From NCBI GenBank assembly GCA_965235115.1, contig OZ249436.1, positions 65,286,001 through 65,350,000 of the forward strand: DNA of 64,000 bases. The letters are read 5' to 3'. The notes beneath the pieces are model-generated. The model was given only the letters and a program-made list of their open reading frames with translations. It searched no databases and was not told the DNA's origin. Both the position numbers and the translations under genes were made by a program. Positions 17,836-63,729 of this stretch are shown here, piece by piece. The DNA comes from Laetmonice hystrix. Its lineage: Eukaryota. How positions within the stretch are numbered: position 1 is the stretch's first letter; each line of letters starts with the position of its first letter.

Positions 17836-17987
17836 CTGAATCCCAACAGCAAGGCGTACATAGAGGGGGTACAGGTCGGGGATTACGTGGACAAAATCAA
17901 CGGTGACCAAACTGCGCACCTTATGCACAACCAGGCCCTACAGCTCATACGAGACGCCTCCGATAAACTCGTCCTAGAACTGAGAAG
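17836..17987 (+). CDS. Exon encoding the C-terminal part of a PDZ domain (ALP/Enigma/synaptopodin-2 type)
   Basis: tttcag|CTG...AG|gtaag, 152 nt, phase 0-2; translates LNPNSKAYIEGVQVGDYVDKINGDQTAHLMHNQALQLIRDASDKLVLELR with typical PDZ features (SKA..GV.VGD.I..ING, H..A..LIR, L.L.L). Confidence 0.92.
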
Positions 17988-19080
17988 GTAAGAGACATGC
18001 TGTGACAGCTAACTCCGGCTCCTCAACGTCAGCTCCACCCTGGTCGGAGATCGTCATTACCTGTATCTCAACCAAAGCTTGTGATCGGCCAGCCAGGGGA
18101 GCTTCTTATATCCTTGGGATTCTGCGTAAAGCGAGTGAAATTACCTATTGAATCTTAGTATGGGACTGGACGCAATACAGTTTTTGAGGTGTTGCTTTCA
18201 GCCTCGGAGGTGGCCCTGAGGGTGTACATGAGCAACTCAAACCCCGTTGGTGTAAACTTATGTCTAGGATTGGTAAAAATATCATTCATAAGTAACATTT
18301 AGTTTCAAGTCTTTAATGTACGTTAACAAGTTGGCCGTGTCAGCTCCGAGATAAACGTTGACCTGGTTGAAGATAGTAACAATGCGTACAACATGTTGCT
18401 GATGCTGACTACAGATGAAGAAACCAGATGAGATGAGGGTTGTGAGACCGACCTCTATAGTGCTTCCTGTTGACCTGTCATTGACTTCCGATTCTGTCCT
18501 CCCTAGACTGTCATCCATAGCAATAGATTACCCTCGCAGGGAGAGTTATGGGCGTGTGTTGTGCGGAATCATCGCACAGGGCCGGGATTGGGCGGGTCCA
18601 AGGGCCGGGATGGGACCAATAGAAGACCGAGCTATACACAAGGCCGAGTCTGGGCCCATCTGTAGCGACCCCATGTGTAGCGGACCCATCGTAAGAGTCT
18701 GAATGTGCTCAGCCCTTCCAACAATTCCAGATTTGGCTGGAATCTTCCGATTGTTTTTGCTGTCTTTCCGCCAAAAGAAAACGTCGTGGTGGTGAACCCC
18801 TAGCCAGTTCATCACCCGACTGATGATTGTAACGGTAATACCACCTGGTGCCTGTTGAATAAAGTGATTATTCTGGTGCAGATGTGCGCTGACATAAATA
18901 TACAAATGTCATTAAAGGTCAAGTGGTATGGTCTTGTGGATTTGATGGGAGAAAATCACCTGTAGGCTGGATGTAACCTAGTGTTACCGGGGCTATGTGT
19001 GCCATATCGCACTTCAGAGGCACAATATTGGTGAATGTAGAGTATTTGACATAGAATCCTAGCTGTTTCTAGGACCTGGG

Positions 19081-19330
19081 ACCATGGCGAGAGTGTGTGA
19101 GTACGTACTCTACTCGTGATTATAGCACCCAGGTCACAGCACTACCATGGCGAGAGTGTGTGAGTTCGTACTCGACTCGTGATTATAGCACCCAGGTCAC
19201 AGCACTACCATGGCGAGAGTGTGTGAGTTCGTACTCGACTCGTGATTATAGCACCCAGGTCACAGCACTACCATGGCGAGAGTGTGTGAGTTCGTACTCG
19301 ACTCGTGATTATAGCACCCAGGTCACAGCA
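19081..19330. repeat. 63-bp minisatellite, 4 copies
   Basis: ACCATGGCGAGAGTGTGTGAGT...CCCAGGTCACAGCACT repeated. Confidence 0.9.
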
Positions 19331-19584
19331 CCCGTCAGGTGGCGCGCAAGTCGTTATCTCGATAACACCCCCCCGTGTATCTCAACGCCAGCAGGCGACC
19401 GGAAGGATGAAGCTATTACAGGGGGTTTTATGACGGGGTTCAGACAGTGCGGGGTGTGGTCGGCATCCCCGTGGTCATGTAGATCTCTGTCATTTATAAG
19501 GTCCTCGGTCCTGGAGTCCGGGGGTACCCATGGGGTCCTCAGGAGAACCAATGTGGTTTCTAATCATGAAACCCTCAGAACTGT

Positions 19585-19740
19585 GGCCCCCAGACATGTG
19601 GTCCCTAGCCATGTGGTTCTCAGCCATGTGGTCCCCAGACATGTGGTCCCTAGCCATGCGGTTCTCAGCCATGTGGTCCCCAGCCATGTGGTCCTCAGCC
19701 ATGCGGTCCTCAGCCATGCGGCCGGTCCTCAGCCGTGCGG
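19585..19740. repeat. 15-bp minisatellite
   Basis: CAGCCATGTGGTCCC variants, about 10 copies. Confidence 0.8.
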
Positions 19741-22700
19741 TCATGAACTGATGACCTGGTATTGGTATTTTTCATACTGTTGGGATGATTTAATCCTTTT
19801 AATAAGCCGAAGTAATATGTAACTGTACCACACTTTGTATGCAAGGCAGGGGTCATGGATAGGGAGAGACAGGACACAACAAAATGGTACGTAAACAGTC
19901 ATGAGGTTCTGATTGGCTGAATCAGGGTAAAACACAACCTGAAAACGCATGGCCTGAGGCCATAAACTTAAGGTAAGTTCGCTGGGATTGTGAATGTGGC
20001 TCTTTATCTTTGCTGATAGGGTAGACATGTGTGGGATGGCTATCTTGTTTAATACATCTGACTTCTAGAGGGACTCGAGGTCCCGAGTGAGCGGGATTCC
20101 AGCAGGTAGAAGATGTAAACATCATTAGAGCCAGCTACGTCACGTCATTGACTTTTACCCGGCCCGGCCCAGCCCGGCCCGGCCCGGCCCGGGTCCAGCC
20201 CGGCCCCGGCTGAGATAGGCCCGCTGTCCGGTACGACAGGCCTCCAGCCTCCATCGGCCGGCGGGGGAAATTATTCTGCCAAAGATGCTCTCAGTAAACA
20301 TTGAGCTAATGGAACAATTAAGTGTTCAAAAAGTGGCGGCGTATCTCCAGTGTCGGGAGTCGGCAGGGTGGGCTTGATAACTGGAGAGGTTGGATAACGT
20401 GGGACAGCCGGCCTCACTCTGTGTACGTACAGTGTAAGGGTTGGTGTAAGTAAACATGTCGGACGTAAGACTGCCACGGTCGTACTTTATGGTAGTAAGT
20501 TATCCCGTCTGGTGGAAAAGGGAAAAACCAATGGGATCAGCTCCTGGCAACCACCATTGTACTTGATGTATGGACCTTAGATCGGGTCCCGACACTAAAA
20601 GAAAAATGTTACAGAGATTATGGTAATACTATCACACACAGGAGGGACGGACGGGTCTTTCTGTTTTTATTGATGTGTAAACAGTGTTTTCAAGAGAACC
20701 ATATGACATGACCGTCGTTGAATGTACAGTTCATTTAAATTGATTTGACGTTGCTTGTAAACCGGGCCCAGATCACTGGAGAGAAAAGCGGTTTCTCAGA
20801 AAGGGGAATCTAATACGTTCAGACCTCTGTGTTCAGACTCTAGTCTGAAGTAACCTCAGTCAACAAACACAGACGTAACCTTTACCAGGAGAATGGTACA
20901 CCAAAGATATACATGACAGTATATAACTGAGCGTATACGTGAGAGAGTTTTCTCAGTGGTTGCAGAAAGCCGTCGTTATACGAGACCGAGCAGGAGAGCA
21001 GCAGGTCTGTGAGACTATGATTTGTGATAGCGGGACATGATGATTGATACTCTCCTATACCAGCGCCTACCCAAGTTTGCCGAGGATGGAGATATAAAAG
21101 ATTTATGTAAATCAGGGGGAAACAGATCCATTCATTGGAAGTGTTGTGTTCCAAGAAAGACGTGGGAGGTGGTGTATAGTGAATGGGAAGTTATTGAGGC
21201 CCAGCGTGGCACAGTGTACACTGGTATTAGGAATCACAATATTGGCAATCCTTTCTGACTGAACCTCAGTATTCTAACCATGCTGGCATGCCGTTCAAGT
21301 GGAGACCGGGAGTATTGGCTGCGATCGTCAGAATACAGGAGTGGAGAACGCCTTTCACAATGAGAAGGAGGGGGAGGCAGATTTCATTATTGTAGTCTGA
21401 CAGGAATATCTAGGCCACAATCAGTGCAGAAAATGAGAAATCATCAGTGTTCTATGGCCGTGAGAATTCTTCAACCATGGGGATTAATTCAGCAAATACC
21501 GGGCGAAATCTTGGAGTAAAGTGAGGATAAGTTGTGTTAGTTGTGACATATGGAGCAGTAAATTCCTTTATAGTCACTGCTATCTTTGCTTTCCGTATCA
21601 TAACAGTCTTGTGTACATTTATTCTGTCTACAAATCAAGACATGGGCAGATGAGATAAATAATATTTTGACCACCGGTGAATGTTTTATATTGTACCTGT
21701 TTGGGTTGTCATGTAATTATCAGTACCTGTAACGTTAGCGACTAGTAAGTCCAATAGTATTTACATGTGGGACAGCATTTTTACGGGTAGGGCAAGCAGG
21801 GCTGGTTAAAGTGATCCACGAGAGGCCGCGGATATTGTCAAACTGGTCGGGGGCTTACGTGTTCAGTGTTCTTTAAGGGATACAGGGGGGTCATAGCAAT
21901 CCCCCTCCTAGTATGTTTTATACGGTACCATCTACCTGTACTAGTCTCGACATGCCATATTGTATGAAAGATGAGTCGGGCGGAGCTCGGCCGCCTATAC
22001 ACCAGACTATGATTGCTATTAGGATCGATACAAAAATGACTAGACACTGGAAAAATATCTTTTGCTCATACGTGGGGATAGGAGACATAGAAAAATAGCA
22101 AGACTGTCGCGTGCCCGGGTCATCGACTGTATCCAAGGAAATTACTGGCTTGAATAAACCAGAAGGTTCATGATTGCGTCGTTGACCTGGCCATGAAGTG
22201 CGCAGTGTGCTTGTCCGGTCGGAAACGGAGGCATTTACCAAACTGTGGCTCGTGTCAATTTGCTCTCCATAGTCCATTCCAGCAATGTAATATATGGATG
22301 TGTGTTCACACATTCTGATTGTTGCGCGAATGATCAATACAGGCTAAAATTGCCTTTGGATCTCTGAGGAGTTGCAGTGAAATTACACCTGACCATTTGT
22401 AAGTAGTATCTGAAAACGAGCCATTGTTGCAGGCCGACCTCATTCCTCAGGTTGTTTTCGCAACAATTATAACCCTTTGTTAGAGAAACTGAGAAGGCAG
22501 TGTTTATAGGTTGAATTCAGTTGCGTGTTACCGTAATGTTTTGTGATTAAAGCGGGTGTTATATTAATTGAGGTGAAACAATGTTGAAATGGCCGTTTCA
22601 CTCATGATGATTGATGAAACGGGACTCGGTCTATTGAGACTGGCGGCGGTTTGAGACAGGTTCTACGGGTGATTGATTGACCACTGTTCACGACAAGGGC

Positions 22701-22816
22701 AGATGAAATGGATCAGTTTGTGGGGGTGGCCTTTAGTTCACCGGGTGCGCCAAGGAATTTGTCTCCTCTGAAAGCAAACAGAGAGAAGATGTGTATGTAA
22801 CATGATGATGGAGGCA

Positions 22817-23053
22817 ATGTGGTCTGGTTAACGAGAAAAGTGAGACTGGCTTCAGATGTGGTCTGGTTAACGAGCAAAGTGAGACTGGCTTCAGATGTGG
22901 TCTGGTTAACGAGAAAAGTGAGACTGGCTTCAGATGTGGTCTGGTTAACGAGAAAAGTGAGACTGGCTTCAGATGTGGTCTGGTTAACGAGCAAAGTGAG
23001 ACTGGCTTCAGATGTGGTCTGGTTAACGAGAAAAGTGAAACTGGCTTCAGATG
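22817..23053. repeat. 39-bp minisatellite, 6 copies
   Basis: GTGGTCTGGTTAACGAG(A/C)AAAGTGAGACTGGCTTCAGAT. Confidence 0.92.
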
Positions 23054-25016
23054 CAATCTTTCTCTGTTCTTTTTACGATGACCTGGCCGGCTGACCCCGG
23101 TCATATAACATTGAGAAAAGTGATTACGGACTAGAGAAAAAACAGTTAATATAGAAAAAGTGTGTAGAAATGTATTCATAGAGTGAAGAACTTAGGAAAT
23201 ATATAGATTGTTTCATACACAGGACCTCTATTTTCTTAATTACCAAAGCTCTATGCTATCCATCCGTGAAATCCCTGCAGTTTATAATAAAACATGTAGT
23301 GTTCATTGTGAAGGAGAACAAAGACCTAGAAGTAGAAAGACAATTGGAGATGGTAAGGTCCAGTTACCCTAATGATGTTCTGTAGTGAGGAGCCAGTGGG
23401 CGGTGCTCTCCACCATGTCTGCTCCACTCACTCAACTGGTTCACTAAGATGCTCAAGGCCTGGCCAGTCTCAGCCTTTGTTGGACACAGGCATCTAATCT
23501 GATTTAGTGGAACACTAAAGCCATGGGAAATTGGCTCGGAGCTATAGCAAGGTTAGGTGGATGATGATGGATGTGCGGCTTGATCTGGCCATGTGATTAG
23601 GCTGTGACATATCACTGAGGGGGTAAGCAGTGTATGCTGGCGCAGGCCGGTACTGTTTGTGATGATAATGGCAGGTTGAAAGGTCGGTACTCTCCCCGTT
23701 ATGATATATGGCAGTTTATCATGTGGAAAGCGTGAACTATGAGGGTTTACATGGCCTAACACGGCCGCCGTTATTCTACAGCGTGTCTGCCCACAGACTG
23801 GATGCCATCAACACAAGGATAAATTGGGGGAAGTGGAATAATACAACCCCACGCCATGAAGTTAATTCACGCCATACACTGAGAGCCACGCCATGAACCC
23901 AGCCACGACATGATGTAGCCCATATCATTTTGCTTCGTATTTTGTGTAGTGGCGAGGGAACCTTATCTTAATTGTCTTTAAGAATGTACGCGAAATGAGG
24001 CGAAGTTCATCTTAAAGTAATCAGTAATCTGAATTAAACAATAACAATTAATGATAATGGAATTGATACAGGTATACATGTATATATGTTATATCATTTA
24101 TGGCGTATGGAGTACTCCCGGTGGGTCTTTGCTTCATAAACTTAACTAATCCGATCCCATGTCCATATCGAGGAGAATCTTGCAATACAGCAGGACAGTT
24201 TGTGAGACAGCCTTCCCGCAGTCAGTCTGTATGAGTCGGTGAAGTACGCCATGGGGACGTTCTGTCAATGTTCTACTGCAGCCAGAAAAATACACCGCCC
24301 TGTAATTGTAGAAGACGTGTTGTCTTCTTGGCATTGGAAAAAAAAACAAGCCAGCGAATTTGTTGGCGTCAAACTGGTGAGCCATTGGAGTGGGAGGGCC
24401 TTGGAGGGTTAACGATCGTATGACAACATTTTGTCTCATCTAAAGGCGGCGGGAAGACGGTCGATACAGTCCCGCACTATAGGACATTGTATACCAACAC
24501 GGGAACTGTGAATCAGGTTTTAAAGTTCAGTGAAGCCAGTTTGCAGCCACTGAGACAATAGGTCAGAGTTCAGAGAAGCCATATAAGGTAGTTCAGAGAA
24601 ACCAGTCTAGGTGTCCTGCACACCCATTTTGAGGAGAGATTTCCCTTCAAATGAGGAAAAATCAGATTGAGGTGACTGAGTGGCAATAAGAAGCCAGAAG
24701 CCAGTGAGAGGTCAAGGGAAACTTGACTAAAGGGAGAGGAGGTTGACAGTGAGTAACTGGTTCAACTAGAGCTGCCAAAAATCTTATTACCAGTCGCTCC
24801 CACTGCTAGCAAAACCACTTGGATGTACACGATATCATAGGCGAGGAATCAACCGGAAAAACTTGTCCATTCCTCACGGGATCCAAGCGTCGATTTGTGA
24901 ATTCCTGGGAGGGTTAATATCCCAGCTGTTCTGTCCGGAGGGTTAAGGGTGTTCAGAGGTAGGCATCCCGTGGTAATATCACCATACAATTTGGTGGCAA
25001 GAAATAAAGGTTCCTA

Positions 25017-26112
25017 GCCCCGACCCTAACCACGGGACCTCCCCCTGTCCCCAGACCTCCCAGAAATACTTACTCCTAGCCCAAGATCTAACCATGGGAT
25101 CTCCCCCTGTCCCCAGACCTCCCAGAAATTTATACTTATTCCTGGCCCAAGATCTGCCGATATCCCGACCCTAACCATGGGTCCTCCCCCTGTCCCCAGA
25201 CCTCCCAGAAATACTTACTCCCAGCCCAAGATCTGCCCATATCCCGACCCTAACCATGGGACCTCCCCCTGCCCCCAGACCTCCCAGAAATTTATACTTA
25301 TTCCTGGCCCAAGATCTGCCGATATCCCGACCCTAACCATGGGTCCTCCCCCTGTCCCCAGACCTCCCAGAAATACTTACTCCCAGCCCAAGATCTGCCC
25401 ATATCCCGACCCTAACCATGAGACCTCCCCCTGTCCCCAGACCTCCCAGAAATACTTACTCCCAGCCCAAGATCTGCCCATATCCCGACCCTAACCATGA
25501 GACCTCCCCCCTGTCCCCAGACCTCCCAGAAAGACTTACTCCTAGCCCAAGATCTGCCCATATCCCGACCCTAACCATGGGTCCTCCCCCTGTCCCGAGA
25601 CCTCCCACAAAGACTTACTCCTAGCCCAAGATCTGCCCATATCCCGACCCTAACCATGGGTCCTCCCCCTGTCCCGAGACCTCCCAGAAAGACTTACTCC
25701 TAGCCCAAGATCTGCCCATATCCCGACCCTAACCATGGGACCTCCCCCTGTCCCCAGACCTCCCAGAAAGACTTACTCCTAGCCCAAGATCTGCCCATAT
25801 CCCGACCCTAACCATGGGACCTCCCCCTGTCCCCAGACCTCCCAGAAATACTTACTCCTAGCCCAAGGTCTGCCCATATCCCAAACCTAACCATGGGTCC
25901 TCCCCCTGTCCCCAGACCTCCCAGAAAGACTTACTCCTAGCCCAAGATCTGCCCATATCCCGACCCTAACCATGAGACCTCCCCCTGCCCCCAGACCTCC
26001 CAGAAAGACTTACTCCTAGCCCAAGATCTGCCCATATCCCGACCCTAACCATGCCCCCCCCCCCTGTCCCCAGACCTCCCAGAAATACTTACTAGCCCAA
26101 GATCTGCCTATA
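25017..26112. repeat. 79-83-bp C-rich minisatellite, about 13 copies
   Basis: CCATGGG(A/T)CCTCCCCCTGTCCCCAGACCTCCCAGAAA(T/G)ACTTACTCCTAGCCCAAGATCTGCCCATATCCCGACCCTAA. Confidence 0.92.
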
Positions 26113-29100: not shown

Positions 29101-29300
29101 AGAGGCCCATATTAAGGAGCAGAATTAATTATTAATGAACTATCTGTATATTGATTTAATGAATCAGAAGGTAATTAATACCTAACATTCTCAAGCCAGG
29201 ACGTACATGAACGTTTCCTATATGCTGTTATTAACGACAATTACAGAGAAGCGATATAGAGAGAAAGTGGGCAAAAAGTCAGATGAATATTTATGACGGT

Positions 29301-30217
29301 CAGACTCGGCTTTGGTTAAACGCACGGTTTGCCATGTGTGGTCCGTGGTGACGTAGGACCCTCAGACTGACTGAGAATGGTTTATTGAGACATGTTGGTT
29401 GGACTCGGCTTTGGTTAAACGCACGGTTTGCCATGTGTGGTCCGTGGTGACGTAGGACCCTCAGACTGACTGAGAATGGTTTAAACGCACGATTTGCCAT
29501 GTGTGGTCCGTGGTGACGTAGGACCCTCAGACTGACTGAGAATGGTTTATTGAGACATGTTGGTTGGACTCGGCTTTGGTTAAACGCACGGTTTGCCATG
29601 TGTGGTCCGTGGTGACGTAGGACCCTCAGACTGACTGAGAATGGTTTAAACGCACGATTTGCCATGTGTGGTCCGTGGTGACGTAGGACCCTCAGACTGA
29701 CTGAGAATGGTTTATTGAGACATGTTGGTTGGACTCGGCTTTGGTTAAACGCACGGTTTGCCATGTGTGGTCCGTGGTGACGTGGGACCCTCAGACTGGC
29801 TGAGAATGGTTTATTGAGACATGTTGGTTGGATTCGGCTTTGGTTAAACGCACTGTTTGCCATGTGTGGTCCGTGGGGACGTAGGACCCTCAGACTGACT
29901 GAGAATGGTTTATTGAGACATGTTGGTTGGACTCGGCTTTGGTTAAACGCACTGTTTGCCATGTGTGGTCCGTGGTGACGTAGGACCCTCAGACTGACTG
30001 AGAATGGACATGTTGGTTGGACTCGGCTTTGGTTAAACGCACGGTTTGCCATGTGTGGTCCGTGGTGACGTGGGACCCTCAGACTGGCTGAGAATGGTTT
30101 ATTGAGACATGTTGGTTGGACTCGGCTTTGGTTAAACGCACGGTTTGCCATGTGTAGTCCGTGGTGACGTAGGACCCTCAGACTGACCGAGAATGGTTTA
30201 TTGAGACATGTTGGTTG
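29301..30217. repeat. 99-bp minisatellite with 66- and 90-bp deletion variants
   Basis: GA(C/T)TCGGCTTTGGTT at 29303, 29402, 29567, 29732, 29831, 29930, 30020 and 30119. Confidence 0.92.
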
Positions 30218-33640: not shown

Positions 33641-33742
33641 GTCAGTGCCGTGACGTCACATGTCGTGTCATGACGTAGCTGTGTTCAGTCCTCAGGACGA
33701 CCACCGTGCTGCCTGCTTCTGTGCACTGCATCCGCCCGACTC

Positions 33743-36446: not shown

Positions 36447-36478
<32 letters not shown>

Positions 36479-50869: not shown

Positions 50870-51412
50870 AAGACCCAACCGTCAAGGGCTATGACCCCAC
50901 CTTGACCTCTGATCTGACCCCCAAGTCAGACGGGAGGAGTGTCTTCTACCATGATCAAGGCATGCCAGTCTTCAGCTCATCTTCACCTCCTTTGACCGAG
51001 ACCACCTCAGGCTCCAGCATGTCTAAATTGACCGACACGTACCTAACCAAGGCACAAACCCAGCCTTCACTGAAATTTCTGGACCTCAGGAGTCCAAACT
51101 ATGGCTCGTATACGCCAGGTTTCGATCGGGACCCTTTTACAATGGACTTGCAACAATTTAGCCATTCTGATGAACAAAAGACGAACATTTCAAATGGTGG
51201 TTATCATAGCGATACAGCTATTGTTACGGGCAAGCCATTGCACTCAAGTGGTCAAATTGGCTATCGTTTGGCGCCAATGGCTGAAAATGGCTTCGACTCT
51301 GAACCAGCGCCATCTAGTGTGCAGCAAAGTAGCTATTCAGTGGCGCCGTCTAGTGAGTCTGAGAACCCAACATCAATGTCTAGTCGATCTCTCTCCCCGC
51401 GTCCCAAGCCAG
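50870..51412 (+). CDS. Internal Ser/Thr-rich exon
   Basis: long pyrimidine tract + ctcag|AA GAC...CCA G|gtgagt, 543 nt, phase 1-1, open throughout (part of ORF 50767-51426). Confidence 0.82.
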
Positions 51413-52719: not shown

Positions 52720-52837
52720 TACGATAGGTCCTACCTTGTAGTTGTCCTTTCCTGATTGTGGTGGTGTGGTTAAGGAGGATGGTTTGAGTTGGCCTGATGT
52801 CAGCCCCCATTGTGATCATTACCTGTTTGATCTTCAG

Positions 52838-53046
52838 GTGTGTGGAGCCCAGGGTCGCGACTGGAGCAACTTCCCACCGAGAGGCTGGAGCGGGAGGTGG
52901 CAAGGAGGGAGCCGGCGCCCGTGCAGGACCTCGCTCATGTCTGGGCGCCCTCAGGGTTGCTCAGTTCCCCGAAGAAGGAGTACAAGCCTGTTTACAACGA
53001 CGGCGCAGCTACGCTACCCTTACCTAAACAGAGTGAGAAACCACAG
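52838..53046 (+). CDS. Internal exon (VWSP / VWAP / YKPV motifs)
   Basis: tcttcag|GT GTG TGG...CCA CAG|gtaggt, 209 nt, phase 1-0; GVWSPGSRLEQ...HVWAPSGLLSSPKKEYKPVYND...EKPQ. Confidence 0.8.
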
Positions 53047-53211: not shown

Positions 53212-53434
53212 GTAAAGCCAGTAGATCCTTTCGCATGGAAACCCCGTGAACGCACCACCACAGCCACAAGCACTGTACCAACAGCCACCATGACTACAAC
53301 AACAACAACATTACATTCAACAACCTCACCAACGTTTACATCCTGGAACGGAACCATCAGTCATTTCTCCGAGTCCAAGAGCGGCCTCCCGACCCCCCAG
53401 AGCCCCACCATCACACTCCTCCAGAAGAGCAGAG
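53212..53434 (+). CDS. Internal Thr-rich exon ending PQSPTITLLQKSR
   Basis: ctgcag|GTA AAG CCA...AGA G|gtaagg, 223 nt, phase 0-1, matches both neighbours. Confidence 0.78.
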
Positions 53435-53865
53435 GTAAGGAGATGAAGTATCTGTGTAATAGATATAAAGTTTACATTGACTTATTTTACTGACAAGTAG
53501 TGGTAGAGACAGAACCCGTATCATCGAAGCACACGCTATGGGAGGATGGAAGTAGAGACTGGTCTACGTGGATGATATGTTGGTGTTGGCTCGGTGTCAG
53601 GAGCAGACAGTTATGTTGGCGTTCACCTTTGTAGTTCACCTTGTAGTTTAGTTTATAAAATAGATGAACAAGTAGACTACCCATCTCTATATCCTTCTCT
53701 TTCTTTTAAGTTCGTTCTCATATTATTTTCATTTAAATCTGTTATATTCATTGAAGCAGTGTTGGAGGTATATGTTGTAGGGATGAGTTGAGTAAACAGG
53801 TCTAAAAGTCTCCACGAGGCTTCCTCTGAAGATGTTCTTTCTAAGCTTCTCGTGACTCCTTTCAG

Positions 53866-55283
53866 CCATGGCAGCTCTTAAAACTCCTAGTGAGTCAAGT
53901 ATAACAGCGAGTGAGTCGAGTGAGATGTATGAATCCATCAGTGAATTTAGTGAAACGACAAATACGGATATCAGTGACTTAAGCAGTATATTCTGCGTTC
54001 CCTATGGGGCAAAGGACAAGGTGGCTGAGCTTCCCATTCAGGTTTCCAGTGTTAGCCATGTGCCAACTGTAAAGAGCGCCCCTGCGACGCCCAGACTCCA
54101 GGCTCGCAGTGAGGTACACATGCAGCCGACGCCTGTGAAAAGCACGCCCAGCTCACCCATGGTACGGTTGAAGCAGGGACCCGCCGTGCCTCCCAAACCT
54201 GTACAATCCCTTATCAAACCCGTACTACCTCTCATCAAACCCAAACGGTGGACCAGACCCTGCAAGTCTCTGTGGGAGTCGGACCTTGACAACGAACCAG
54301 CCTGGACTGCCGACCTGTTGGCACGGCTAGACGAGCTGGAAGCTAAAGATAACGCCTCAGTACAGAGAGGCCAGGTAGTTAGCCCAGAGCCCGCTCGACC
54401 CATGTCTCCAGAGATGAGACTCTTCCCCAACGAGCCTTTGTCGCCACTTCTTCCAGACTCCATACCCTTTCCTCTTCGACCTACCTCCCCTGAGAGTGAG
54501 ACTATCCCTGTCAGACCTGTCACCCCCATTACTCTCGAATCAAGAGCCATTCCTGCCCGACCAATAACTCCAAACCTTAAATCCCTTCCCATCCGTCCAG
54601 TCACCCCTGACCCAAAATGGCCTCCTCTCCGACCTCTGACCCCTGATCCTAGGATTATGGATGCACTACTTTACTCCCCTGTCCCTGCGGAGAGGTCAAA
54701 CATTGACCATGTCACCATCACTTCTACGAAGAGTGCGCCAGCCTCTCCTCAGGTAACTATCCGTAGCAGTGCAAAACTGAGAAACCTTTCACCAAAAAGT
54801 GCTCCTTCATCACCAGTCATCATGCGCACAATAAGGAACAAAACTAAGGCGAGGCAGCAACAGATTGTTCCAATGCCTGACCCGACGCCAGTACCTGTAG
54901 TCATTAGGAGTCAGCCTAGCTCTCCTGTGGTACAAATAAAAAGCAAGTATCGAGGTCGGGATCTTCTCTCACCTCCCAAGTCCTCAGCCAACCAGTTTCG
55001 ACAACAAGATCGCCCCCACAGCCCCTCACCGGTTCCTGTCCATGTACCGGTGGAGAAACTCTCCGATGTGCCGCTCAGTATGCCAGCACCGGTCGCCAAG
55101 TCCATCCCCACACAGGACAGACTGATGAGCAAGACGCCCCCAATCAAGCTGCGCCGCCCAAAGATGGCTCAGTGTAGGCAGCCTTTGTTACTCGTGAGTT
55201 CCCCTCCTGCATGCGTTTGGTTGGAGTGGACATCCAAATCAACAGGTCACCTTACAACATGTAAACCCACAAGAGAGTATTGA
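53866..55283 (+). CDS. Large Pro/Ser-rich alternative exon (terminal, first or cassette; 3' boundary uncertain)
   Basis: 471-codon non-repetitive ORF; ctcctttcag|CC ATG gives a phase-1 acceptor in frame with the 53434 donor; candidate donors after 55173 (phase 1, gtaggc) and 55193 (phase 0, gtgagt); stop at 55281-55283. Confidence 0.75.
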
Positions 55284-55579
55284 ATAGTACACTACAAGGC
55301 AGTTGATTGAGGAATGTCTGCCCTCAAAGATCAAGGCGAACCATCCAACTGTAGAGTTTTCACTCTTTGAACCAATGCTGAAGGCATCTCTTGTGGAAAT
55401 CTGACTCATCTTACGTGAGGTTCATGTTATTTTTATGAAGGGTACAAAAGTGTGTCATTGAAACCCCTGGTGATTGATTTTGATTCTCCTGACGTCTGGC
55501 TAAGATGATGAAGGTGAAGGAGAGCCAACCATTGTGAACGTGAACCCATACAAAGTGACACCGCGGGCCTGTTGATTTG

Positions 55580-55800
55580 TGCGGCTTACGTCGGGCTGGT
55601 GACGTGATACGTCCTGTTGACGTATCCAACCCGTCCTGCCACCCATTGTTACGTCACCATGAGACTTGCCAGGAGGTCGCCATGGCTGACGGCCCCCTGT
55701 ACCGCAGTTGTTAAACCCGCCCCTTCACCTCCCTCGCGAGCTTCTCTCTCACACACCACTCGTTCTCTGTTGTTCTTGTTTCACACACCGTTCACCCAGT
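55580..55800 (+). promoter_or_regulatory. Candidate internal promoter/enhancer (ACGT-core, CRE-like cluster)
   Basis: Five ACGT cores in about 70 bp (TTACGTC, TGACGTGA, ATACGTC, TTGACGTA, TTACGTCA), CpG-rich, followed by a CT-rich tract; motif evidence only. Confidence 0.35.
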
Positions 55801-57919
55801 TTGTCAGCTGTTTTGTCTTGAACCAGTTTTTATAGCCACTTTTGGTATTTTAAAATGTTTGTTGTGTTTTGACTTGGAGAATTTGAGCTCTGACCTTTGC
55901 TTTTGATATATCTTGCCTCACCTCACAGCGGGACGTATACTTAGAGTAAAGCCCACAAACAGCCGTTTTGACTTAACTAAATTTTGAGAAGTGACCGTCC
56001 AGTTTAATGTGTCTCTCTACCTTTTTTGACAGCAAGATGTATCATTGCACAGTCACTTAAGAAGGTTCTGAGTAAAGGTATGGTTTCCGAGGCCACCTTA
56101 CTCATCTTGATTCATCTATTTAAAACTGCCTTCTCAAGGCTCTTCGCTCATGTAGCCTGTCTATTCGATTTAGTTTGACAATTTCTTCTTGAGGTAGATT
56201 CTTTAGTGACTAGCCTCCTCCCATGGCGACCTGGGAGAAACTAGGTGCCGACTCTAACCTTGTTTTGGCCGTGAAGGTTGCCTTACATGCCGACACGACT
56301 TCCAATCACTATTACTCTGTCAGTCACTTTTCCTGTCCCTCACGTAGCATGTCCGGTCGGTTTAGTATGCCACTTTGTCAACACAGAGTTCTCCACTCAT
56401 TACTCAATATAGAATAGTATATCGAAGTCGGCGTCAAGACTTGACAAGACGTGAGCTTGAAGACGTAACAGTATGCCTCCCCGTCAGATTGCACCCGGTA
56501 GTCGTAGCAGTGCACCTAGTGCTGCCCTCTCGTGGTTGCTCATTACTCTACCAGGCCAACAAACTGGCAAACTGGTAAGAGTAGGAGGACAAGAAAAAGT
56601 AATCTGTATTGACACATCACGCTATTATGGCACCATCACATCAACATCTTAGTGTAGTTAGTTGTCCTGACTCTGCGCAAATCAGACATATATACATGTA
56701 TACGTTTTTGTAATGAAGCCATCAGTGTAAACAAGCTAAAGTATTTTTTCTTTTACATGATAAGTTTATTGTTACTGTAATTTTTATCCTTTGTGCTTCT
56801 TTGTGTCGTTATTTTATGTCTGTATTGTGTGTGTGTAAGAGAAGCCTTGTGTCGGCGTTAAGATTTGAAATGTTGATGTAGAAAGCTAGCATAACTACGT
56901 TCGCAGTAGCTTTGTAACTCAAGTAATGGTTTGGTGACTTTAACCCGAATTTATCAGAATGCATCCCAAACCCTTTATACATATTTTAGTGTTTATACGG
57001 TCTAATTTATGATTGTTCAGTGAAAGAATTGATATTGGTTGCAAGCAGAAAAAAAAACATTGCACTTCTCGTTCCCTACCTAAATAACATTGTGTATTAG
57101 CTGTCTCTTTGTCAACACGAGTCCAAAGGTGAAAAGTAATAATACTTGAGAGGAGTGATATGACCTTATCACTGTTTGCCTTTAGTCGATAAACACTGAC
57201 CAGTATTATTAATCTAGTTAAAAAAATAGGAGAGGGTCATAAGAAATATGGGCAAGAATGGGCCAGGCTCAGTCAGTAACATCCACACCCTGTGTAACAT
57301 TCACGACTCTATACAGGGCCGCCGAGAGCCAGAAGGGAGAAACTTATTTCCCGGTCGCGGGGCAAAACCTAGCCCGGGACCCCTTTCTTATTAGATTAAA
57401 AAAAGTATTTAAACAAAGCTGGGCCCTGTGTGAGGTCTTGCTAGGCCGCAGAGTAGTTAGCTCACTGGCATTCTCTCGGCGGTGCTGAATCAGTGAGTTA
57501 CAAACTAAAAGCCTAACTCTATGAGCAAAGCCAGTGCCCCAGATTGCCCATCATCATCATCATGAGGTAGTTTTGTGTGTGTACACGTCATCAGTTCCTG
57601 TGTTCCTTCACCCAAGCCTCGCCATCATGGCTTCCACCGCCAGCCCCCTCACAGTGTGAGTTCACCTTGACTTGTGGTTTTAGTTTGTGCATGCGTACCT
57701 TAGCAGGTCTACGCTTCTCTAAGCAGATGAAGTTTGCAGTGATGAAGGATGGTGGTTTTTCTAGTGGTAGAATTAAATCAAATGTTACCTGGCATGATTT
57801 GGCATAAACCTAAGTAAGCCATCCTGCACTACTGGGGAAGCCACAAGGACTGTGTGGCCGACGTCATTGAAGCCATCTGCTTAGCGGGGCGGCCTATAAA
57901 GACCTGTGTATATTTTCAG

Positions 57920-57976
57920 ACGATGAAGACCCAAGTTTGGCGCAATGGCCTGGTTCGAGTTCTGTTATGGTCACTG
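57920..57976 (+). CDS. Candidate 57-nt symmetric cassette exon
   Basis: tattttcag|AC GAT GAA...ACT G|gtaaga, phase 1-1, (D)DEDPSLAQWPGSSSVMVT; strong splice sites only. Confidence 0.45.
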
Positions 57977-60184
57977 GTAAGACTGTTTGGCTGCATCGTG
58001 CTGCCTGCGTCCGTCAACTCTCACCCGACATACCCACAAATATCTGTAACATCGTCACGCCTCTTGTTTCATCACTCACTCAAGTCCAACACGATTTCCG
58101 ACTATTTCAATGAAAAATCTTATTTTTATTTACGTTCATATTTTTTTTTTCTTTTTCTACTTTTATTTATTACATCTTTTGGTTTTGTAATCACTTTGCA
58201 TCGCTGTAAAACTAACACACTTGGGGAAACCATTTTGGTGACTAACCTCATTATTATTATTAATATATTTGAGATGAATTGTGACGCCCTATGGTAAGAA
58301 CGTGTATTGTACATGTGTTGATAGTCCTGACTATCGTCTTGTGTCCTCGCCACTGTAGCCAGTGCTCTCTCATACCAAACTCGTTGCTAAATCGTGCAGC
58401 TGCTACTACTATGACGTTCCCCATGTAGGATGCTTTGTGCCGTCGGTGTTAGCCGATAGGTGGCACCACGTGCGTAACAAATACGACCGGATCGTTGTAG
58501 GCTCAGGATAATACAACATAGAATTATATAAGGTACATTCTAGTGATATCAACATTAAGTTAAACCCATACACCTTCTTGTAATTAGAAACCCAAAATTA
58601 GTTATTTATTTAGAATTAAAAGTTCACTTAATGCGTTCCACAGTTCTTCCCCCGTGTAGACATCGTGAGGGTTTCCAAAAAAATCTAAGTAGTTGCCCTC
58701 TTCAAGGTCGCTCACACAAAATGGGAAAAACTTGGCCCTAACCAAAATAAGGGGCACCGTAGCCGTTAGTGTTACTGTAGAGGTTAATAAGTTTGGATTT
58801 ATGTTGTAGAATTTTATCTTGAGTTTATTTGTTGCACTAGCTTGTATGAAAGACAATACGTGCCCAGAGCTTCCAAGCCCAGTCCCCTTCCACCCCTTTT
58901 TTGGAAAAAATATTTTAAATGATATTGTATCGAGTATATGTGTTGTGATATTGTCATATCTGATGTTTAGCCGGAGGTTAAATGTAAGGCGGTTAATGGA
59001 ATTAACACTTGGAAGCTCTGACTATATGCCGACTTGTGTCATTCACGGATATACATTGTATATTAGTGATACTAGCCCTTAGTTATACCCAAAACCTGAC
59101 AATATCGAAACCCCAGTCGTCATGACACCTTAGCAATTCATTTATTTTTTAGAAATTTATCGATTTATATTTTCTCATTGTCTTATTTCGTTCTTGATTG
59201 GGTGTTTTATGGAAATGCAAAGAATTAACCCAAAAGGAAGCGCAGTGCCTTAATTTGGGAACAGAGTGCTTTTTACTAAAAGGTGTGGATGCGTTGGTTA
59301 AACTCTTGCTTTGATAGGGTTTTAGTTATTTTTTAGATCAAATGTAAAATTCTAAGATTATTGAAAGCAAGATTAACTCACATTGCCTCAAAAAAATTGT
59401 TTTGTAAATATATTTTGATCATGTGTTGCCCGATAATCTTTTTCTTTCAATTTTTGAGAAAAATCTTTTTGTCCAATTTCCTCGTCAAGAATGATCTGAT
59501 TTTGCTTAATGTGTCCATCTTAATGTAAACAAGTATTTCTACAGAGGATACCATAGGTTTAGTATATTGTATATAAAGTGATCAATGTGACGAATCTCAT
59601 TTATATTTTATTGTGTATTAGATGGACAGAAGAAGATTATAAATCGTGAACAATTGTAAAAGTAATTCTGCCGTATTGGTTCAGTTATTGATATTTTGTA
59701 ACAGCGACAACTGGAACTTGTTATTATGACGATTTAATTTTATTTTTATTCAGTTTGTTGTATCTATTCCGTTACAGTTAGTAGATTAAGCTTAACCCCT
59801 TTTACCGAAAATCTAAGCTATGATACATTCATGATCGTTAAGTCAGGTTGTGAACACCATGGACCATAAGAATTCCTATGTTTATACCGACATGCCTACC
59901 TTGGACAAGATTATTCCTTCCCCCAAAACAACTTACACCTTTACCGTGTCACATAGAATCAAATGTAGGCCTCCCTATACTGTGTTATTATGGGGGTATT
60001 ATCAATAAATACACCTGTGTGTGTTGTACGTTTTTTTCAGATTCGGCAAATGGTGATTATTTTCAGGTATTTATATTTTAGAGGTGAATATCTGATGTAC
60101 CTGGAATGATCGATGATGAACTACTCGTGGCCAAGCGAGAAGGTTAGCTATATAGTAATGGCTAGTTCTGTGTCTCTCCACCAG

Positions 60185-60381
60185 ATGGCTCTCTCCCCAA
60201 GGGCGCCTTGTACATGGGAACGAAGGAGACGGTAGATGGCGATATGAAACACACTGATACCTTCTACATGGTACCTGGGGAGAAAACAACAACGACACGG
60301 ACAATAGAGAAAAAGGCACCAAGGTATGCAGGAGTCGGGCCCAAGGACAAGGATACTGGCATGCCCGTCAGCCTCAGGACG
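60185..60381 (+). CDS. SORBS: Exon encoding the N-terminal half of the SoHo (sorbin homology) motif
   Basis: ctccaccag|AT GGC...AGG ACG|gtaagt, 197 nt, phase 1-0; ends YAGVGPKDKDTGMPVSLRT, matching the SoHo pattern YPGIGPVDESGIPxAIRT. Confidence 0.9.
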
Positions 60382-60693
60382 GTAAGTAACACTGTGGGTG
60401 TGATTTATTTACAAGGATATAGGTATGTCAATATCACTAAGACAGTGAAGTGTGTGTTGGTTAATAGGGACATGGGTATGTACGTTGTAAATCAGCGAGA
60501 GAGGTGTTTTTATTTCGGCAAAAATCCCGGAGAAATATTGGAAACCGTAAAAATAGTCGCCCTGTCCATGGCAGACAACCTGCAGCTCCAGAAAACATAC
60601 AAAGGATCTTGTCAGTGTGCTGCAGAATGGTGTTGGGTATAAAGTGTTGTCCTATTGTGTGTCTGATAGGCGACCTGTCTGTGTTTCTTACAG

Positions 60694-60775
60694 ACCGTGG
60701 ATGAAGGCAGCCAGAAAGAGTGGTACAAACAGATGTACAAGTCCCTACACAAGGACCACAAACCCAAGTCTAAAG
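60694..60775 (+). CDS. SORBS: Exon encoding the C-terminal half of the SoHo motif
   Basis: ttcttacag|ACC GTG...AAA G|gtgagt, 82 nt, phase 0-1; TVDEGSQKEWYKQMYKSLHKDHKPKSK, matching SoHo TVDRPKDWYKTMFKQIH. Confidence 0.92.
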
Positions 60776-61590
60776 GTGAGTTCGTGCGTTGACGACCGGC
60801 GCGACCCCTGGCGGAGGTTTCATGGGGTGATTTACTACTCTGCACTGATTGACCCACTCTTCCTGACCCTCGCACCTGGGCCGTAGTCGAGCACTTAGCG
60901 ATGAAATGATATGAAGGAATCTTATTGGTCTGATGATGTGTATGTGTATGATCCCCTCCCCTCCCCCAAGGAAGAAAACGACTTCTAACTTTCGATTCAT
61001 TGATCGATTCATTGAGTTTCGAGTCAAAAATGATTAAGAGGAAACATGTTGCCAAGAAATAACCCCCACACTGTGTGATGTGATTGTTTAATGGTTGAAT
61101 TTCCTAGTGATTTCGTTTTATTCACCTGTAGCGTGGTAGTGAAGAGGAATGACCAAACTTTATCATGAACCCCTGCAACCTTTTGCGGCCCATTTAATGT
61201 GACAAATTCGGTATTCTGATGACTTTTGCATTTTACAGTTGGCAGATAGTAGATCATTTACCGGCTCCAAATAATTATGTAATTTCTGCCTGAAAATATC
61301 ACGTTCGGAAGGTCTCGATTTCATGCAAAGGTTTCAGGGGGTATCGTGTTTTGTTAACATAAAATGTAGAGGAACAGATTTAGCGTGTGAATGCTCACCT
61401 TCTGCTATGTAACGACCCATAGGTAATGATTAGCTAGTTGACTGTATGACTGTCCCTTGACGACGTGACGGTTGTTTTATCGTCTGCCTACTGAAGACGA
61501 CAGACGCTGATAGCGCCACCTGTCGACTGTTGGTTGAACTACCTGACCAACCCGCCCGCTCATGTTTGTGCCGTGCCCATTTGCTTACAG

Positions 61591-61650
61591 ATGGTGATGT
61601 TGATGATGATAGTGATGATGGTGGTGTATCAGGAGGGAGTGAATCGGAAG
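61591..61650 (+). CDS. Candidate acidic cassette exon
   Basis: ttgcttacag|AT GGT...GAA G|gttttt, 60 nt, phase 1-1, DGDVDDDSDDGGVSGGSESE; donor is weak. Confidence 0.5.
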
Positions 61651-63666
61651 GTTTTTATCACAACTCTGCTGTCTTACTGTGCCTCTCTGTGCCTCAGTCC
61701 CCTGTCATCAGCTTCAGGCCCAATACCCAGCTATATGCTGGTTCCACCTAGTGGCACAAACTGCAACTAGTTTAGGCTTTACCGATTCATTTCGTCTCAA
61801 AACTTCTTTAACAAATGCAGTCTTGGAAAGAAGCTGATGACAAGTGTGATTGAAGAATGTAGATAATTAAGACATTATGTTGATATGTTTGTTAAGATTT
61901 CATTTGTTTAAATGTCAAGAAAATACAAGTGATTTCATGCAAGGCCTAATCTGACATATTTATTATGTCCTGGTTTTGCCCTAAGTCCTTAACGCAAGGT
62001 CGGAAGGGTAGCATGGTTGTAGGCTAGGGTTCTGAAATGTGTGTTTGCCTGCTATCATTTTAAAGTCGTTCTTTAAATCTGTATAGCACTATTATGCAAT
62101 GAACATAACTTTAAGTCATGATGGAACTTAATGTCTTCACAGTTAGGAACAGGCAGTAAACTAAACATCAGTACGGTCCCATTGTATTAATTCAGTCCGT
62201 AAAACACAAATCAGTAAAGTCCAGAAACCTGCCAAAATTGTTGTGGAGATATTGAGTGTTTTTCAACAGGATTTGCTGCATGATATGTTATAGGACATAA
62301 ATATATGTTGTAGTAATATCAATGTTGCGGTTGTAAGCCTATGTTGAAGGTTACATTGCATGTTGATTCATCAGTAGAAAGTTGATGCATGTTGAGGTGA
62401 TATTTCTGTATCCCCCGTCATCCCAGTACCATAATCCGTTGTTCACCATATACACGAGTCATTGAAGATGACAGGATTCGAATCTAAAGTCGTTGAAAAA
62501 GCACCTTTATAAATTCTTGTTCCTAGCTGTCAGATAATTTAGATATTTAAGATATTGGATGAACAACTCATGCTGTACAGTCGGCTGCAACTAACCTCAA
62601 GGATTGGACTTATACTTAAAATACATACTCCTTCTGTCGTAGCTGAAATCTTGCGGCCTGTGATTATTTATAGAAAACGGTCCGTTTTCCGGGATTAGCC
62701 TTGGTTTACGTCAGTACCGAACAGACCATAGACGGTTTACTGGCTGAGGGTGGGTATGAACACCCCCTGGAGGTGTTAGTAACCCCTGGGGTATCATACC
62801 TGGGGTGTGGGTGGGTGTTGATTGTCTGGTCACCTGGTTAACGTCAGACCATACCAGTCTGCCGTCTCAAGGCGTCCATGTATTGTGGTTTGTGTATTGT
62901 GTAACTAGTCGATGTTAAGGCGTTGTGTCAGGTTATTAATACCAGCTATGTTGTGGTATAGCATGGCATGGTCTGTATACCAGTGTAAACGTGTCGGTAC
63001 TCTACAGACTCTACTATATATTGTTATCTCACATGGTTTTTTTTCTGCTTCACCATTACGCGTTCCACGGATGCACACACAATGGTACGCAATGATTATT
63101 TGGTCTACGATGTAATTTTAATATAATATTTTCGCCTTCGGCTTCATGACTTTTGTTTCTTTGCCGTGGCTTTGGATATAACCATCGTTAAGAATGGTTG
63201 AATGAGAAGTCTTTCTGGTCCCGATAGTTTGAAATTTTCGAGTTCTAGAGCGTGATATTAATTTATATTGTCATCTCTGATCCTAATATACGGTTAAATC
63301 TATGACTGATTTGACATGGCTATAAGATTGTTGAAAGTATCAGTCTCAAAGATTGTTTGAAATATTGAACAAAACGAGGATGTTTTTCGCCTTTACCCGT
63401 GCAGACCCAGACGTAAATTAGTGTTGACTGGTAGCATGCTCCATCTGGATGGAATAATATGACTCGGAACGTGCAAGCAGCAGCATTTATCAACGATGGC
63501 CATGCCTGGTTCTGTTCTGTGTTTGGTTTCCGGCAGTAACTTCCCGCAGTTTGCATGTTGTCTGTATCTTTGAGAATGAATAGGACCACATGTCATATTA
63601 CGTTATTGAAGGCACGCCTTAGTGCTTGCGTTTAACGCTAACATTGGGCTTGTTTACATCTTGCAG

Positions 63667-63729
63667 ATGTAAACACATACAAACCCACCTATGTGTTCCC
63701 AGATGATGACTCGGAACATGAAAAGGAAG
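63667..63729 (+). CDS. Internal exon after SoHo
   Basis: tcttgcag|AT GTA...GAA G|gtaagt, 63 nt, phase 1-1; DVNTYKPTYVFPDDDSEHEKE. Confidence 0.78.

Follow-up and report, generated by a model that had tools for sequence, protein, structure and literature searches.

A SORBS-type adaptor gene of Laetmonice hystrix whose long form probably begins with a PDZ domain

Proteins of the SORBS family are described as carrying an N-terminal SoHo domain plus three SH3 domains at the C-terminus, and a PDZ domain is never mentioned (PMC5706990). Its members include SORBS1 (CAP/ponsin), SORBS2 (ArgBP2) and SORBS3 (vinexin), Drosophila CAP and C. elegans SORB-1. As in the gene described here, the family is represented in an invertebrate genome by a single gene (PMC5706990). 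Two other groups of proteins carry a PDZ domain. The PDZ-LIM proteins (PDLIM, ALP/Enigma and ZASP) have one to three C-terminal LIM domains, and SYNPO2 lacks SoHo and SH3 domains.

A locus in the genome of Laetmonice hystrix is very probably a single cytoskeletal adaptor gene of the SORBS (CAP/ponsin/vinexin) type in which a PDZ domain starts the long form. The window, a stretch of 64,000 nucleotides, holds the 5' two-thirds of this gene on the + strand. The gene is orthologous to vertebrate SORBS1/2/3, fly CAP and worm SORB-1, and the only match to the Sorb profile in the whole 627-Mb genome is its second SoHo exon. Sixteen GT-AG exons, one upstream of the window and 15 within it, give a stop-free open frame of 1,389 codons in which all phases agree. 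Within this frame the PDZ half-exon (17836-17987), an exon with a short conserved motif (about 46286-46504) and the two SoHo exons (60185-60381 and 60694-60775) join in phase. PDZ, motif and SoHo, as noticed in the initial annotation, are all confirmed at their positions on the + strand. That annotation had also assigned them to one gene, and this is borne out by the stop-free GT-AG chain, by RNA contigs that join 53866-55173 to the SoHo exons, and by the architecture of relatives. Its span for the gene, 17836-63729, ends at a true donor but is too short on both sides: the gene extends to ~133,190 and to ~62 kb upstream of the window.

The PDZ domain is encoded by two exons. Coding exon 1, with the first half of the domain and the ATG, lies at G000:C1:65223860-65223952 (window -62140 to -62048, + strand) and is the top genome-wide match to the N-terminus of the orthologues (E 1.8e-9). 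It encodes MTSTVVLWGGAPWGFRLQGGREFDEPITIAK, ends at the donor AAG/GTAAGT and has an in-frame stop two codons 5' of the ATG. The long transcript would begin at this ATG, some 62 kb before the window. Searches with WGF-type motifs over the window and the 60 kb upstream of it did not find this half, which was located 2 kb farther out. Exon 1 shares its chromosome and strand with exon 2, from which it is separated by an intron of ~80 kb.

Coding exon 2 (17836-17987, + strand; Pfam PDZ E 7e-6, PDZ_6 E 1e-6) encodes LNPNSKAYIEGVQVGDYVDKINGDQTAHLMHNQALQLIRDASDKLVLELR. Since its match is limited to profile positions 31-80, it represents the C-terminal half of the domain only. Thus the PDZ domain first noticed in the window is real, but its first half and the ATG lie outside. 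Exon 2 has an AG acceptor in phase 0 and the donor AG/GTAAGA in phase 2, and shows 47-69% identity with the PDZ of those spiralian proteins that combine PDZ, SoHo and SH3 domains. The domain belongs to the 'PWGFRLQGG' class, common to ALP/Enigma/ZASP and synaptopodin-2. These proteins are alpha-actinin binders.

Between PDZ and SoHo lies a long, disordered linker, encoded mostly by phase-1 symmetric exons that could be skipped without breaking the frame. All of these exons are on the + strand. Exon 3 (30605-30720, GDVGG...GRLNGDVNHNL...; phase 2 in, 1 out; acceptor gttacag/G, donor ACG/gtaagc) falls within an unbroken BLASTP match, residues 1-205, to the Mercenaria and Owenia orthologues. It is followed by a probable cassette exon at 33437-33649 (phase 1-1), recognised by its splice sites and ending in ...SSVWSPFGQC, whose VWSPxG block is kept in orthologues; when it is included, the N-terminal match lengthens to span residues 1-205, at E 1e-35 to 1e-36. 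The exon at 36235-36555 (phase 1-1; donor 36549 or 36555) carries a conserved YKPVSFG block and then a poly-Q (CAG) tract, and Owenia residues 63-95 match 36198-36302 by tblastn. A proline-rich exon at 42168-42422 (PPSY and repeated PGRPGTPG; phase 1-1) is predicted from splice sites and an open frame; no clear orthologue match was seen for it.

The motif exon, at about 46286-46504, carries SKGLALFLKRQQK. Its ends are approximate: 46292 or 46319 could serve as acceptor instead, and the donor GTACGG is weak. The motif itself, TKSKGLALFLKRQQK, lies at 46465-46503, and oyster and abalone proteins match 46441-46551 by tblastn. Of 22 spiralian orthologues, 16 have a motif of the form S[KR]G[LMI]x[LM]F..[KR]Q.E[KR] at the corresponding position; it is conserved in molluscs, and absent from annelid models and some isoforms. 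The actin-binding motif SFM (V..L...FE; PMC13364712) was considered as the identity of this SKGLxLF motif, but its spacing is different and it was discarded.

A candidate exon at 49049-49174 (phase 1-1) is predicted at the head of a tandem array that spans 49.1-50.4 kb. A chain that joins 46504 straight to 50870 was rejected because it creates a T+AA stop at the junction, and inserting 49049-49174 removes this stop. Like the exons at 42168-42422 and 46286-46504, it is predicted by splice-site logic. The next exon, 50870-51412 (phase 1-1), is rich in Ser and Pro, has the strong acceptor ttttccccttctcag and the donor CAG/gtgagt, and ends in ...SPRPKPG. Joining its end to 52838 restores a conserved KPGVWSPG block.

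The exon at 52838-53046 (VWSPG...KKEYKPV; phase 1 in, 0 out) is defined by its splice sites and by five orthologues that match 52798-53043 in tblastn. It falls within the central orthologue match, whose best E is 4e-16 with a chiton protein. The exon at 53212-53434 (PFAWKP ... TPQSPTITLLQKSR; phase 0 in, 1 out; donor GAG/gtaagg; tblastn 53335-53562) contains the FAWKPP and TQSPYITLLQKSR blocks, which are kept in all orthologues. A Pro/Ser-rich exon of 1,308 bp follows at 53866-55173 (phase 1-1), beginning cag/CCATGG. It shows 37% identity to a 418-aa open reading frame in a relative's genome, the sole match of a word-based homologue search. The ATG at 53868 could serve as an alternative start for forms without the PDZ domain.

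The SoHo domain is split by an intron, with half of it in each of two exons. Exon A (60185-60381, ...KKAPRYAGVGPKDKDTGMPVSLRT; phase 1 in, 0 out) matches Owenia by tblastn at E 1.4e-18 and 58% identity and ends ...APRYAGVGPKDKDTGMPVSLRT/gtaagt. Exon B (60694-60775, TVDEGSQKEWYKQMYKSLHKDHKPKSK; phase 0 in, 1 out) covers positions 22-40 of the Pfam Sorb profile (PF02208) and scores 20.3 bits; with just half of the domain present, this falls short of the 27-bit cut-off. For the same reason a Pfam scan of the read-through frame 60166-60639 did not report Sorb. Taken together, exons A and B align with the Sorb regions of the orthologues at E 1e-25 to 1e-32, and the orthologues themselves score 19-34 bits on the profile.

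RNA evidence comes from spliced contigs of one public run, whose type is not stated on its record, compared over 54800-60790. Contigs cover 54800-55173, and one, which includes 54863-55173, joins 55173 to 60185 (GT..AG), 60381 to 60694 and 60775 to 61591; its free end past 60775 is an exact and unique match to 61591-61620. Splicing in the 3' part is therefore observed directly, on both sides of exon A and for exon B as well. Judging by the collinearity of orthologues, the PDZ exons on the 5' side and the SH3 exons on the 3' side would belong to the same transcript, and the PDZ domain is likewise expected in Laetmonice hystrix mRNA.

The contig leads into an acidic micro-exon, DGDVDDDSDDGGVSGG, at 61591-61638 (phase 1-1; acceptor cttacag; 3' end predicted). 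The last coding exon in the window, NVNTYKPTYVFPDDDSEHEKE, lies at 63667-63729 (phase 1-1). Three orthologues match it at 63663-63728 (tblastn), its NTYKPTYxFP block recurs in orthologues, and 63729 is a genuine AG/GTAAGT donor. Beyond the window come an optional exon of 2,118 codons and three SH3 domains. In window coordinates these lie at ~116.5-119.0 kb (Pfam 51 bits for the second half), at 119.25-120.05 kb (27 bits) and at 133.02-133.19 kb (50 bits). The last is followed by the stop at ~133,190, ~69 kb past the window end.

The closest relatives of the PDZ domain are in gene models from ~20 molluscs and the annelid Owenia, as the initial annotation had allowed when it supposed that similar invertebrate models might exist. 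The combination of PDZ, SoHo and SH3 is found in these spiralian annotations. The ten long proteins that come closest to the PDZ exon belong to bivalves, a gastropod and an annelid, and all of them have PDZ and Sorb. SH3 domains number three in eight of them, two in Argopecten and none in an 848-aa Pinctada model. A second search adds Mya, Pecten, Ylistrum, Ruditapes, Crassostrea virginica, Biomphalaria, Lymnaea, Arion, Patella and the chiton Liolophura. These relatives are collinear with the locus from PDZ through third SH3. A word-based search with the Owenia SoHo region returned four proteins, too few to be informative on PDZ with SoHo beyond Spiralia.

When the spliced conceptual protein was compared with orthologues by BLASTP, and orthologue proteins with the locus by tblastn, the blocks matched in the same order. 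The conceptual protein gave E 1e-30 to 1e-36 for the PDZ/N-terminal block and 1e-25 to 1e-32 for the SoHo block. Such agreement in order means that the chain from PDZ to SoHo exceeds chance.

One alternative is that two genes adjoin here: a PDZ gene (-62, 17.8, 30.6 kb ... ~51 kb) ending before 53.8 kb, and a SoHo and three-SH3 gene starting at ATG 53868, with the in-frame chain between them a coincidence. The CCATGG at 53866-53871 is a good start context, the RNA evidence extends upstream only to 54800, and phase-1 symmetric exons chain easily. However, the acceptor at 53866 is an ordinary polypyrimidine-AG site whose phase fits that of 53434. Furthermore, the blocks KPGVWSPG, EYKPV, FAWKP and TQSPxITLLQKSR lie 5' of this point, and in all orthologues they share one protein with both PDZ and SoHo. 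A terminal exon, LIM or other C-terminal domain for a separate PDZ gene was not found, and two genes are improbable. Still more improbable is that the link between PDZ and SoHo is an artefact of merged gene models spread by automatic annotation. Many orthologue models are indeed automatic predictions, and most of the supporting proteins come from Gnomon or other pipelines. Yet several independent pipelines arrive at this build (RefSeq, and GenBank submitters for Sinanodonta, Pinctada, Owenia and Mytilus coruscus), and the intron phases also fit in the unannotated Laetmonice hystrix genome. It is seen as well in the Arion entries, 11 isoforms with no genome contig on record, which fits a transcriptome origin and hints at independent transcript support.

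A reading compatible with a single gene, and possible although not the likelier one, is that the PDZ form is a minor isoform from an alternative promoter, with a mostly PDZ-less product as in flies, worms and vertebrates. The annotations of orthologues list as many as about 38 isoforms, PDZ-less models exist (Mya 'SRBS1-like', centipede SORBS2), and PDZ-less forms from an internal promoter, with the possible start at 53868, could be the major products. On the other hand, the 47-69% identity of the PDZ holds from chiton to annelid, which argues for a used and selected exon. The single gene with a PDZ-bearing long form is the best explanation.

The initial annotation had called the PDZ and motif 'synaptopodin-2-type', and this proves to be a resemblance only. 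The PDZ scores 65-67 bits against SYNPO2/SYNPO2L and 61-76 bits against PDLIM/ZASP (PDLIM7 76, ZASP 72), from databases that differ, and so scores as high or higher against PDLIM7 and ZASP. Pfam Calsarcin (PF05556) gave no match at E<=10 for the motif exon of the window or for five orthologue motif segments, whereas two control segments of SYNPO2L match at E 2e-4 and 1e-2. Comparison of the motif regions with those of SYNPO2 by hhalign gave 91% probability, for two alignments both selected by the motif. Moreover, a distinct SYNPO2-like gene with PDZ and Calsarcin (E 1e-4) lies just downstream, tail-to-tail; its PDZ exons occupy 170147-170055 and 163636-163481 in window coordinates. A chiton has SORBS and SYNPO2-like genes in the same arrangement, and the scallop Argopecten has an unrelated downstream neighbour. 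A PDLIM neighbour of the kind noted for vertebrate SORBS genes was not seen: the ~120 kb examined downstream hold no LIM match, none of 78 LIM matches in the genome falls within C1:65.22-65.47 Mb, and the PDZ-LIM loci are on this chromosome at distances of 14 and 55 Mb.

From what is known of the families, the N-terminal PDZ would give the SORBS adaptor a tether in cis to alpha-actinin. For C. elegans, the proteins that provide this tie in trans are alpha-actinin and the PDZ-LIM protein ALP-1 (PMC5706990). SoHo and SH3 would continue to act, as elsewhere in the family, at integrin and actin attachment sites, and the SKGLxLFxKRQ motif probably adds a contact to alpha-actinin, filamin or actin. 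All of these partners are proposed by analogy. The spiralian gene may then be a natural 'fused' version of the SORB-1/alpha-actinin/ALP-1 interaction placed by worm genetics, which can be tested in spiralian muscle.

A more speculative and rather unlikely reading is that the PDZ and SKGLxLF head, with the tail-to-tail SYNPO2-like neighbour, are remnants of an old linked cluster in which SORBS, synaptopodin-2/myozenin and PDLIM modules swapped exons. If so, PDZ-bearing SORBS would be either the ancestral bilaterian form, which ecdysozoans and vertebrates have lost or split, or an early-spiralian capture of the neighbour's 5' module. Either way, one protein would have built into it a link to alpha-actinin for which other animals use a separate PDZ protein.

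A literature search found no paper describing or characterising a PDZ-bearing SORBS. The build had been put forward as under-described, which holds for the literature, but it is not rare: it is predicted in many molluscs and Owenia, common in spiralian annotations, and undescribed rather than unique. The individual locus is an ordinary orthologue of publicly deposited gene models. Its interest is that the SORBS of a large clade, comprising molluscs and at least one annelid, has a PDZ of the alpha-actinin type and a short conserved motif beyond the SoHo and three SH3 domains of the literature definition. The conserved SYNPO2-like neighbourhood may help to trace the origin of Z-disc and dense-body scaffold genes.

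Compared with the published SORBS, CAP and SORB-1 proteins, the Laetmonice gene adds the N-terminal PDZ and the conserved SKGLxLFxKRQ motif. It shares with SYNPO2 and SYNPO2L an N-terminal PDZ of the PWGFRLQGG class, at 43-46% identity, and [KR]Gxx[LM]FxKRxxR-type motifs downstream of it. With the PDLIM/ALP-Enigma/ZASP group it shares an intron at the equivalent point of the PDZ, about residue 33/34, but this locus and its orthologues are without LIM domains. The mollusc and Owenia models have PDZ, motif, central blocks, SoHo and three SH3 domains in identical order, their PDZ block being 49-59% and their SoHo block 41-50% identical, and differ from the Laetmonice gene in their linker exons (poly-Q, Pro-rich), which are species-specific.

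The gene at this locus adds another orthologue to a variant of the SORBS family that is undescribed yet visible in databases. The published definition of the family does not include a PDZ domain (PMC5706990), and no description of a PDZ-bearing SORBS protein was found in the literature searched. The initial annotation had presented the build as a candidate under-described system, and had allowed that similar invertebrate gene models may exist; PDZ-based protein searches place it already in public predictions from about 20 spiralian species.

The 51-residue PDZ exon served as query in an exhaustive HMMER search for such orthologues, which returned 148 proteins. With multi-PDZ proteins and short ORF fragments set aside, there were ten long single-match proteins, matched at residues ~32-82: Sinanodonta, Mercenaria, Dreissena, Crassostrea angulata, two Mytilus species, Haliotis, Argopecten, Pinctada, and the annelid Owenia. 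All ten combine an N-terminal PDZ with Sorb. Three SH3 domains are present in eight of them, two in Argopecten, and none in the 848-aa Pinctada model. A second search, using the Mercenaria PDZ, added Mya, Ylistrum, Pecten, Mytilus coruscus, Crassostrea virginica, and Ruditapes, as well as Haliotis asinina, Lymnaea, Biomphalaria, Arion, Patella, and the chiton Liolophura. Arion is represented by eleven entries, none with a genome contig on record. These are presumably products of transcriptome assembly, and would as such provide independent mRNA-level support.

When the ten orthologue proteins were compared by tblastn with 244 kb around the window, the matches stood in protein order along the + strand of the locus. 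The PDZ half lies at 17.8 kb, the SKGLxLF-type motif at 46.4-46.6 kb, central blocks at 52.8-53.5 kb, and the SoHo at 60.18-60.78 kb. Small exons follow at 63.7, 66.4, 78.5, 87.6, 89.0, and 104.6 kb. The three SH3 domains, confirmed by Pfam, are found at 116.5 and 118.9 kb (SH3-1), 119.25 and 119.9 kb (SH3-2), and 133.02-133.19 kb (SH3-3), after which the protein stops. Between the SoHo and SH3 exons, the same gene contains, on the + strand, an open frame of 2,118 codons (91732-98085).

The exon chain was built by splice-site and phase analysis, guided by blocks conserved among orthologues (NGxxNGD, VWSPxG, YKPVSF, SKGLxLF, KPGVWSPG, EYKPV, FAWKP, and TQSPxITLLQKSR). Up to 63729 it comprises 16 exons, with every intron GT-AG and a 1,389-codon frame free of stops. 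For three of the exons (42168-42422, 46286-46504, and 49049-49174) the boundaries are no more than predicted. Conceptual translation gives a protein that aligns with Mercenaria and Owenia without a break over residues 1-205 (E 1e-35 to 1e-36); its central block reaches E 4e-16, with the chiton protein, and its SoHo block matches orthologues at E 1e-25 to 1e-32. Skipping would leave the frame intact for eight of the 15 in-window exons, which are phase 1-1; this accords with the dozens of isoforms annotated for orthologues.

A first version of the chain joined 46504 directly to 50870 and had a stop at that junction; the candidate exon 49049-49174 removes it. This exon is the first copy in a tandem array (49049-50430) in which the exon end and donor (...SVGPKPG|GTGAGT) are repeated many times, and the open chain needs only that copy. 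The KPG|GTGAGT ending also closes exon 50870-51412. Elsewhere, a long CAG/CAA (poly-Q) tract at 36300-36540 lies within a coding exon that also bears the conserved YKPVSFG block.

The surrounding assembly is eukaryotic (627 Mb in 35 contigs), and the window (G000:C1:65286001-65350000) is intron-rich, with abundant intronic tandem repeats that give rise to many spurious long ORFs. Such repeats lie at 19100-19800, 22700-23100, 25000-25650, 29300-30150, 35150-35700, and 40190-41560. The ORFs within them, on either strand and as long as 432 codons, do not resemble coding sequence.

The PDZ domain is divided between two exons, predicted from orthologues to be part of this gene's mRNA. Its presence at 17836-17987, as initially annotated, was confirmed by Pfam and by splice sites, for the C-terminal half: the ORF piece 17791-17988 matches PDZ (E 7e-6) and PDZ_6 (E 1e-6) at profile positions 31-80 only. 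This second exon, on the + strand, has a phase 0 acceptor (tttcag|) and a phase 2 donor (AG|GTAAGA). Searches of the window and of 60 kb upstream did not find the first half. The genome-wide best match to Mercenaria protein residues 1-33 lies on the same contig, at C1:65223866-65223955 (+ strand, E 1.8e-9, 73% identity). It reads TAA GGA GGA ATG ... = MTSTVVLWGGAPWGFRLQGGREFDEPITIAK|GTAAGT, with a start codon, an in-frame stop upstream of it, and a donor in phase 0; the acceptor at 17836, on the far side of an intron of ~80 kb, is in the matching phase. The domain belongs to the PWGFRLQGG class. Because its bit scores overlap (61-76 against PDLIM/ZASP PDZs, 65-67 against SYNPO2/SYNPO2L), it is assignable to neither group.

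The two SoHo exons likewise proved to be as described. Exon A (60185-60381) ends ...APRYAGVGPKDKDTGMPVSLRT|gtaagt, and exon B (60694-60775) reads TVDEGSQKEWYKQMYKSLHKDHKPKSK|gtgagt. The sole Pfam Sorb match in the whole genome falls in exon B, covering model positions 22-40 and scoring 20.3 bits. The read-through ORF of the SoHo region gave no Sorb score in the Pfam scan, because an intron divides the 42-position domain.

A search for sequencing runs found none on record as RNA. X4 is a small run from the same sample, with one fifth of sampled words; though listed as of unknown kind, it behaves as RNA, with exon-only coverage and GT..AG joints in the region whose contigs were examined (54800-60790). 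One 741-nt contig joins 54863-55173, 60185-60380, and 60693-60775 with GT..AG ends, and its onward letters match uniquely at 61591-61620, straight after a cttacag acceptor. The genomic run X1 showed no such joints in the same region. The codon begun by the final T at 55173 is completed by the AT that opens 60185, giving ...PKMAQ-Y-GSLPKG... in frame. The 1,308-bp exon 53866-55173 is therefore part of the SoHo transcript. This exon opens cag|CCATGG (53866-53871), whose in-frame ATG (53868) has a good start context and could be the initiation codon of PDZ-less isoforms made from an internal promoter.

PDZ domains of the PWGFRLQGG class (ALP, ZASP/Cypher, CLP36) bind alpha-actinin, and SORBS SH3 domains have vinculin and other adhesion proteins as partners. 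The analysis establishes gene structure, domains, and orthology; binding roles are drawn from knowledge of the families. Fusion of a PDZ to SORBS would yield an adaptor that anchors itself to alpha-actinin; a further contact of Z-disc type may come from the motif, and cassette exons would tune the set of modules present. In C. elegans, the arrival of SORB-1 at the actin-binding part of dense bodies depends on alpha-actinin and on the PDZ-LIM protein ALP-1 (PMC5706990). Filamin C has calsarcins, myopodin, and ponsin/CAP among its partners (PMC7216277).

The SORBS-PDLIM adjacency that the initial annotation cited for vertebrates was not seen here. Among the LIM matches of the genome none lies near the locus, and two PDZ-LIM loci on the same chromosome, Enigma-like and ALP-like (C1:9620201-9676184, -, and C1:51207091-51220437, +), lie at distances of 55 and 14 Mb. 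A separate gene on the minus strand follows shortly after the SORBS stop (G000:C1:65428485-65456147, window ~142.5-170.1 kb). It has a first exon at 170147-170055 (MGEQVTVTMTGGGPYGFRLFGGDNIPLTVAK), a second PDZ half at 163636-163481 (52% identical to SYNPO2L, E 8e-10), and a 455-codon exon (L023:8485-9849, ~142.5-143.85 kb) that matches Pfam Calsarcin (E 1e-4) and carries two KGxxxFxKRR motifs, ARGQKMFMKRRQKSARW and GRGGKLFAKRRAKAEQWVV. This neighbour is the real synaptopodin-2-type gene, and it faces SORBS tail-to-tail. The chiton Liolophura likewise has an opposite-strand PDZ + Calsarcin gene 6 kb beyond its annotated PDZ-Sorb-SH3 gene; the scallop Argopecten has an unrelated gene as the neighbour within 10 kb.

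The SORBS gene itself was also said to contain a synaptopodin/myozenin-like motif. A motif is present at 46465-46503 (TKSKGLALFLKRQQK), and its tie to SYNPO2 is one of resemblance. Pfam Calsarcin matched neither the window exon nor any spiralian motif segment tested, and scored E 2e-4 and 1e-2 on SYNPO2L segments. Profile-profile comparison of the motif regions gave 91% probability over 28 columns; both alignments were chosen by the motif, so the comparison is no independent test. SYNPO2 and SYNPO2L have two or three copies of [SG]KGxx[LM]FxKRxxR. A single instance of the pattern S[KR]G[LMI]x[LM]F..[KR]Q.E[KR] stands between PDZ and SoHo in 16 of the 22 spiralian proteins examined; it is absent among them from Owenia models and some mollusc isoforms.
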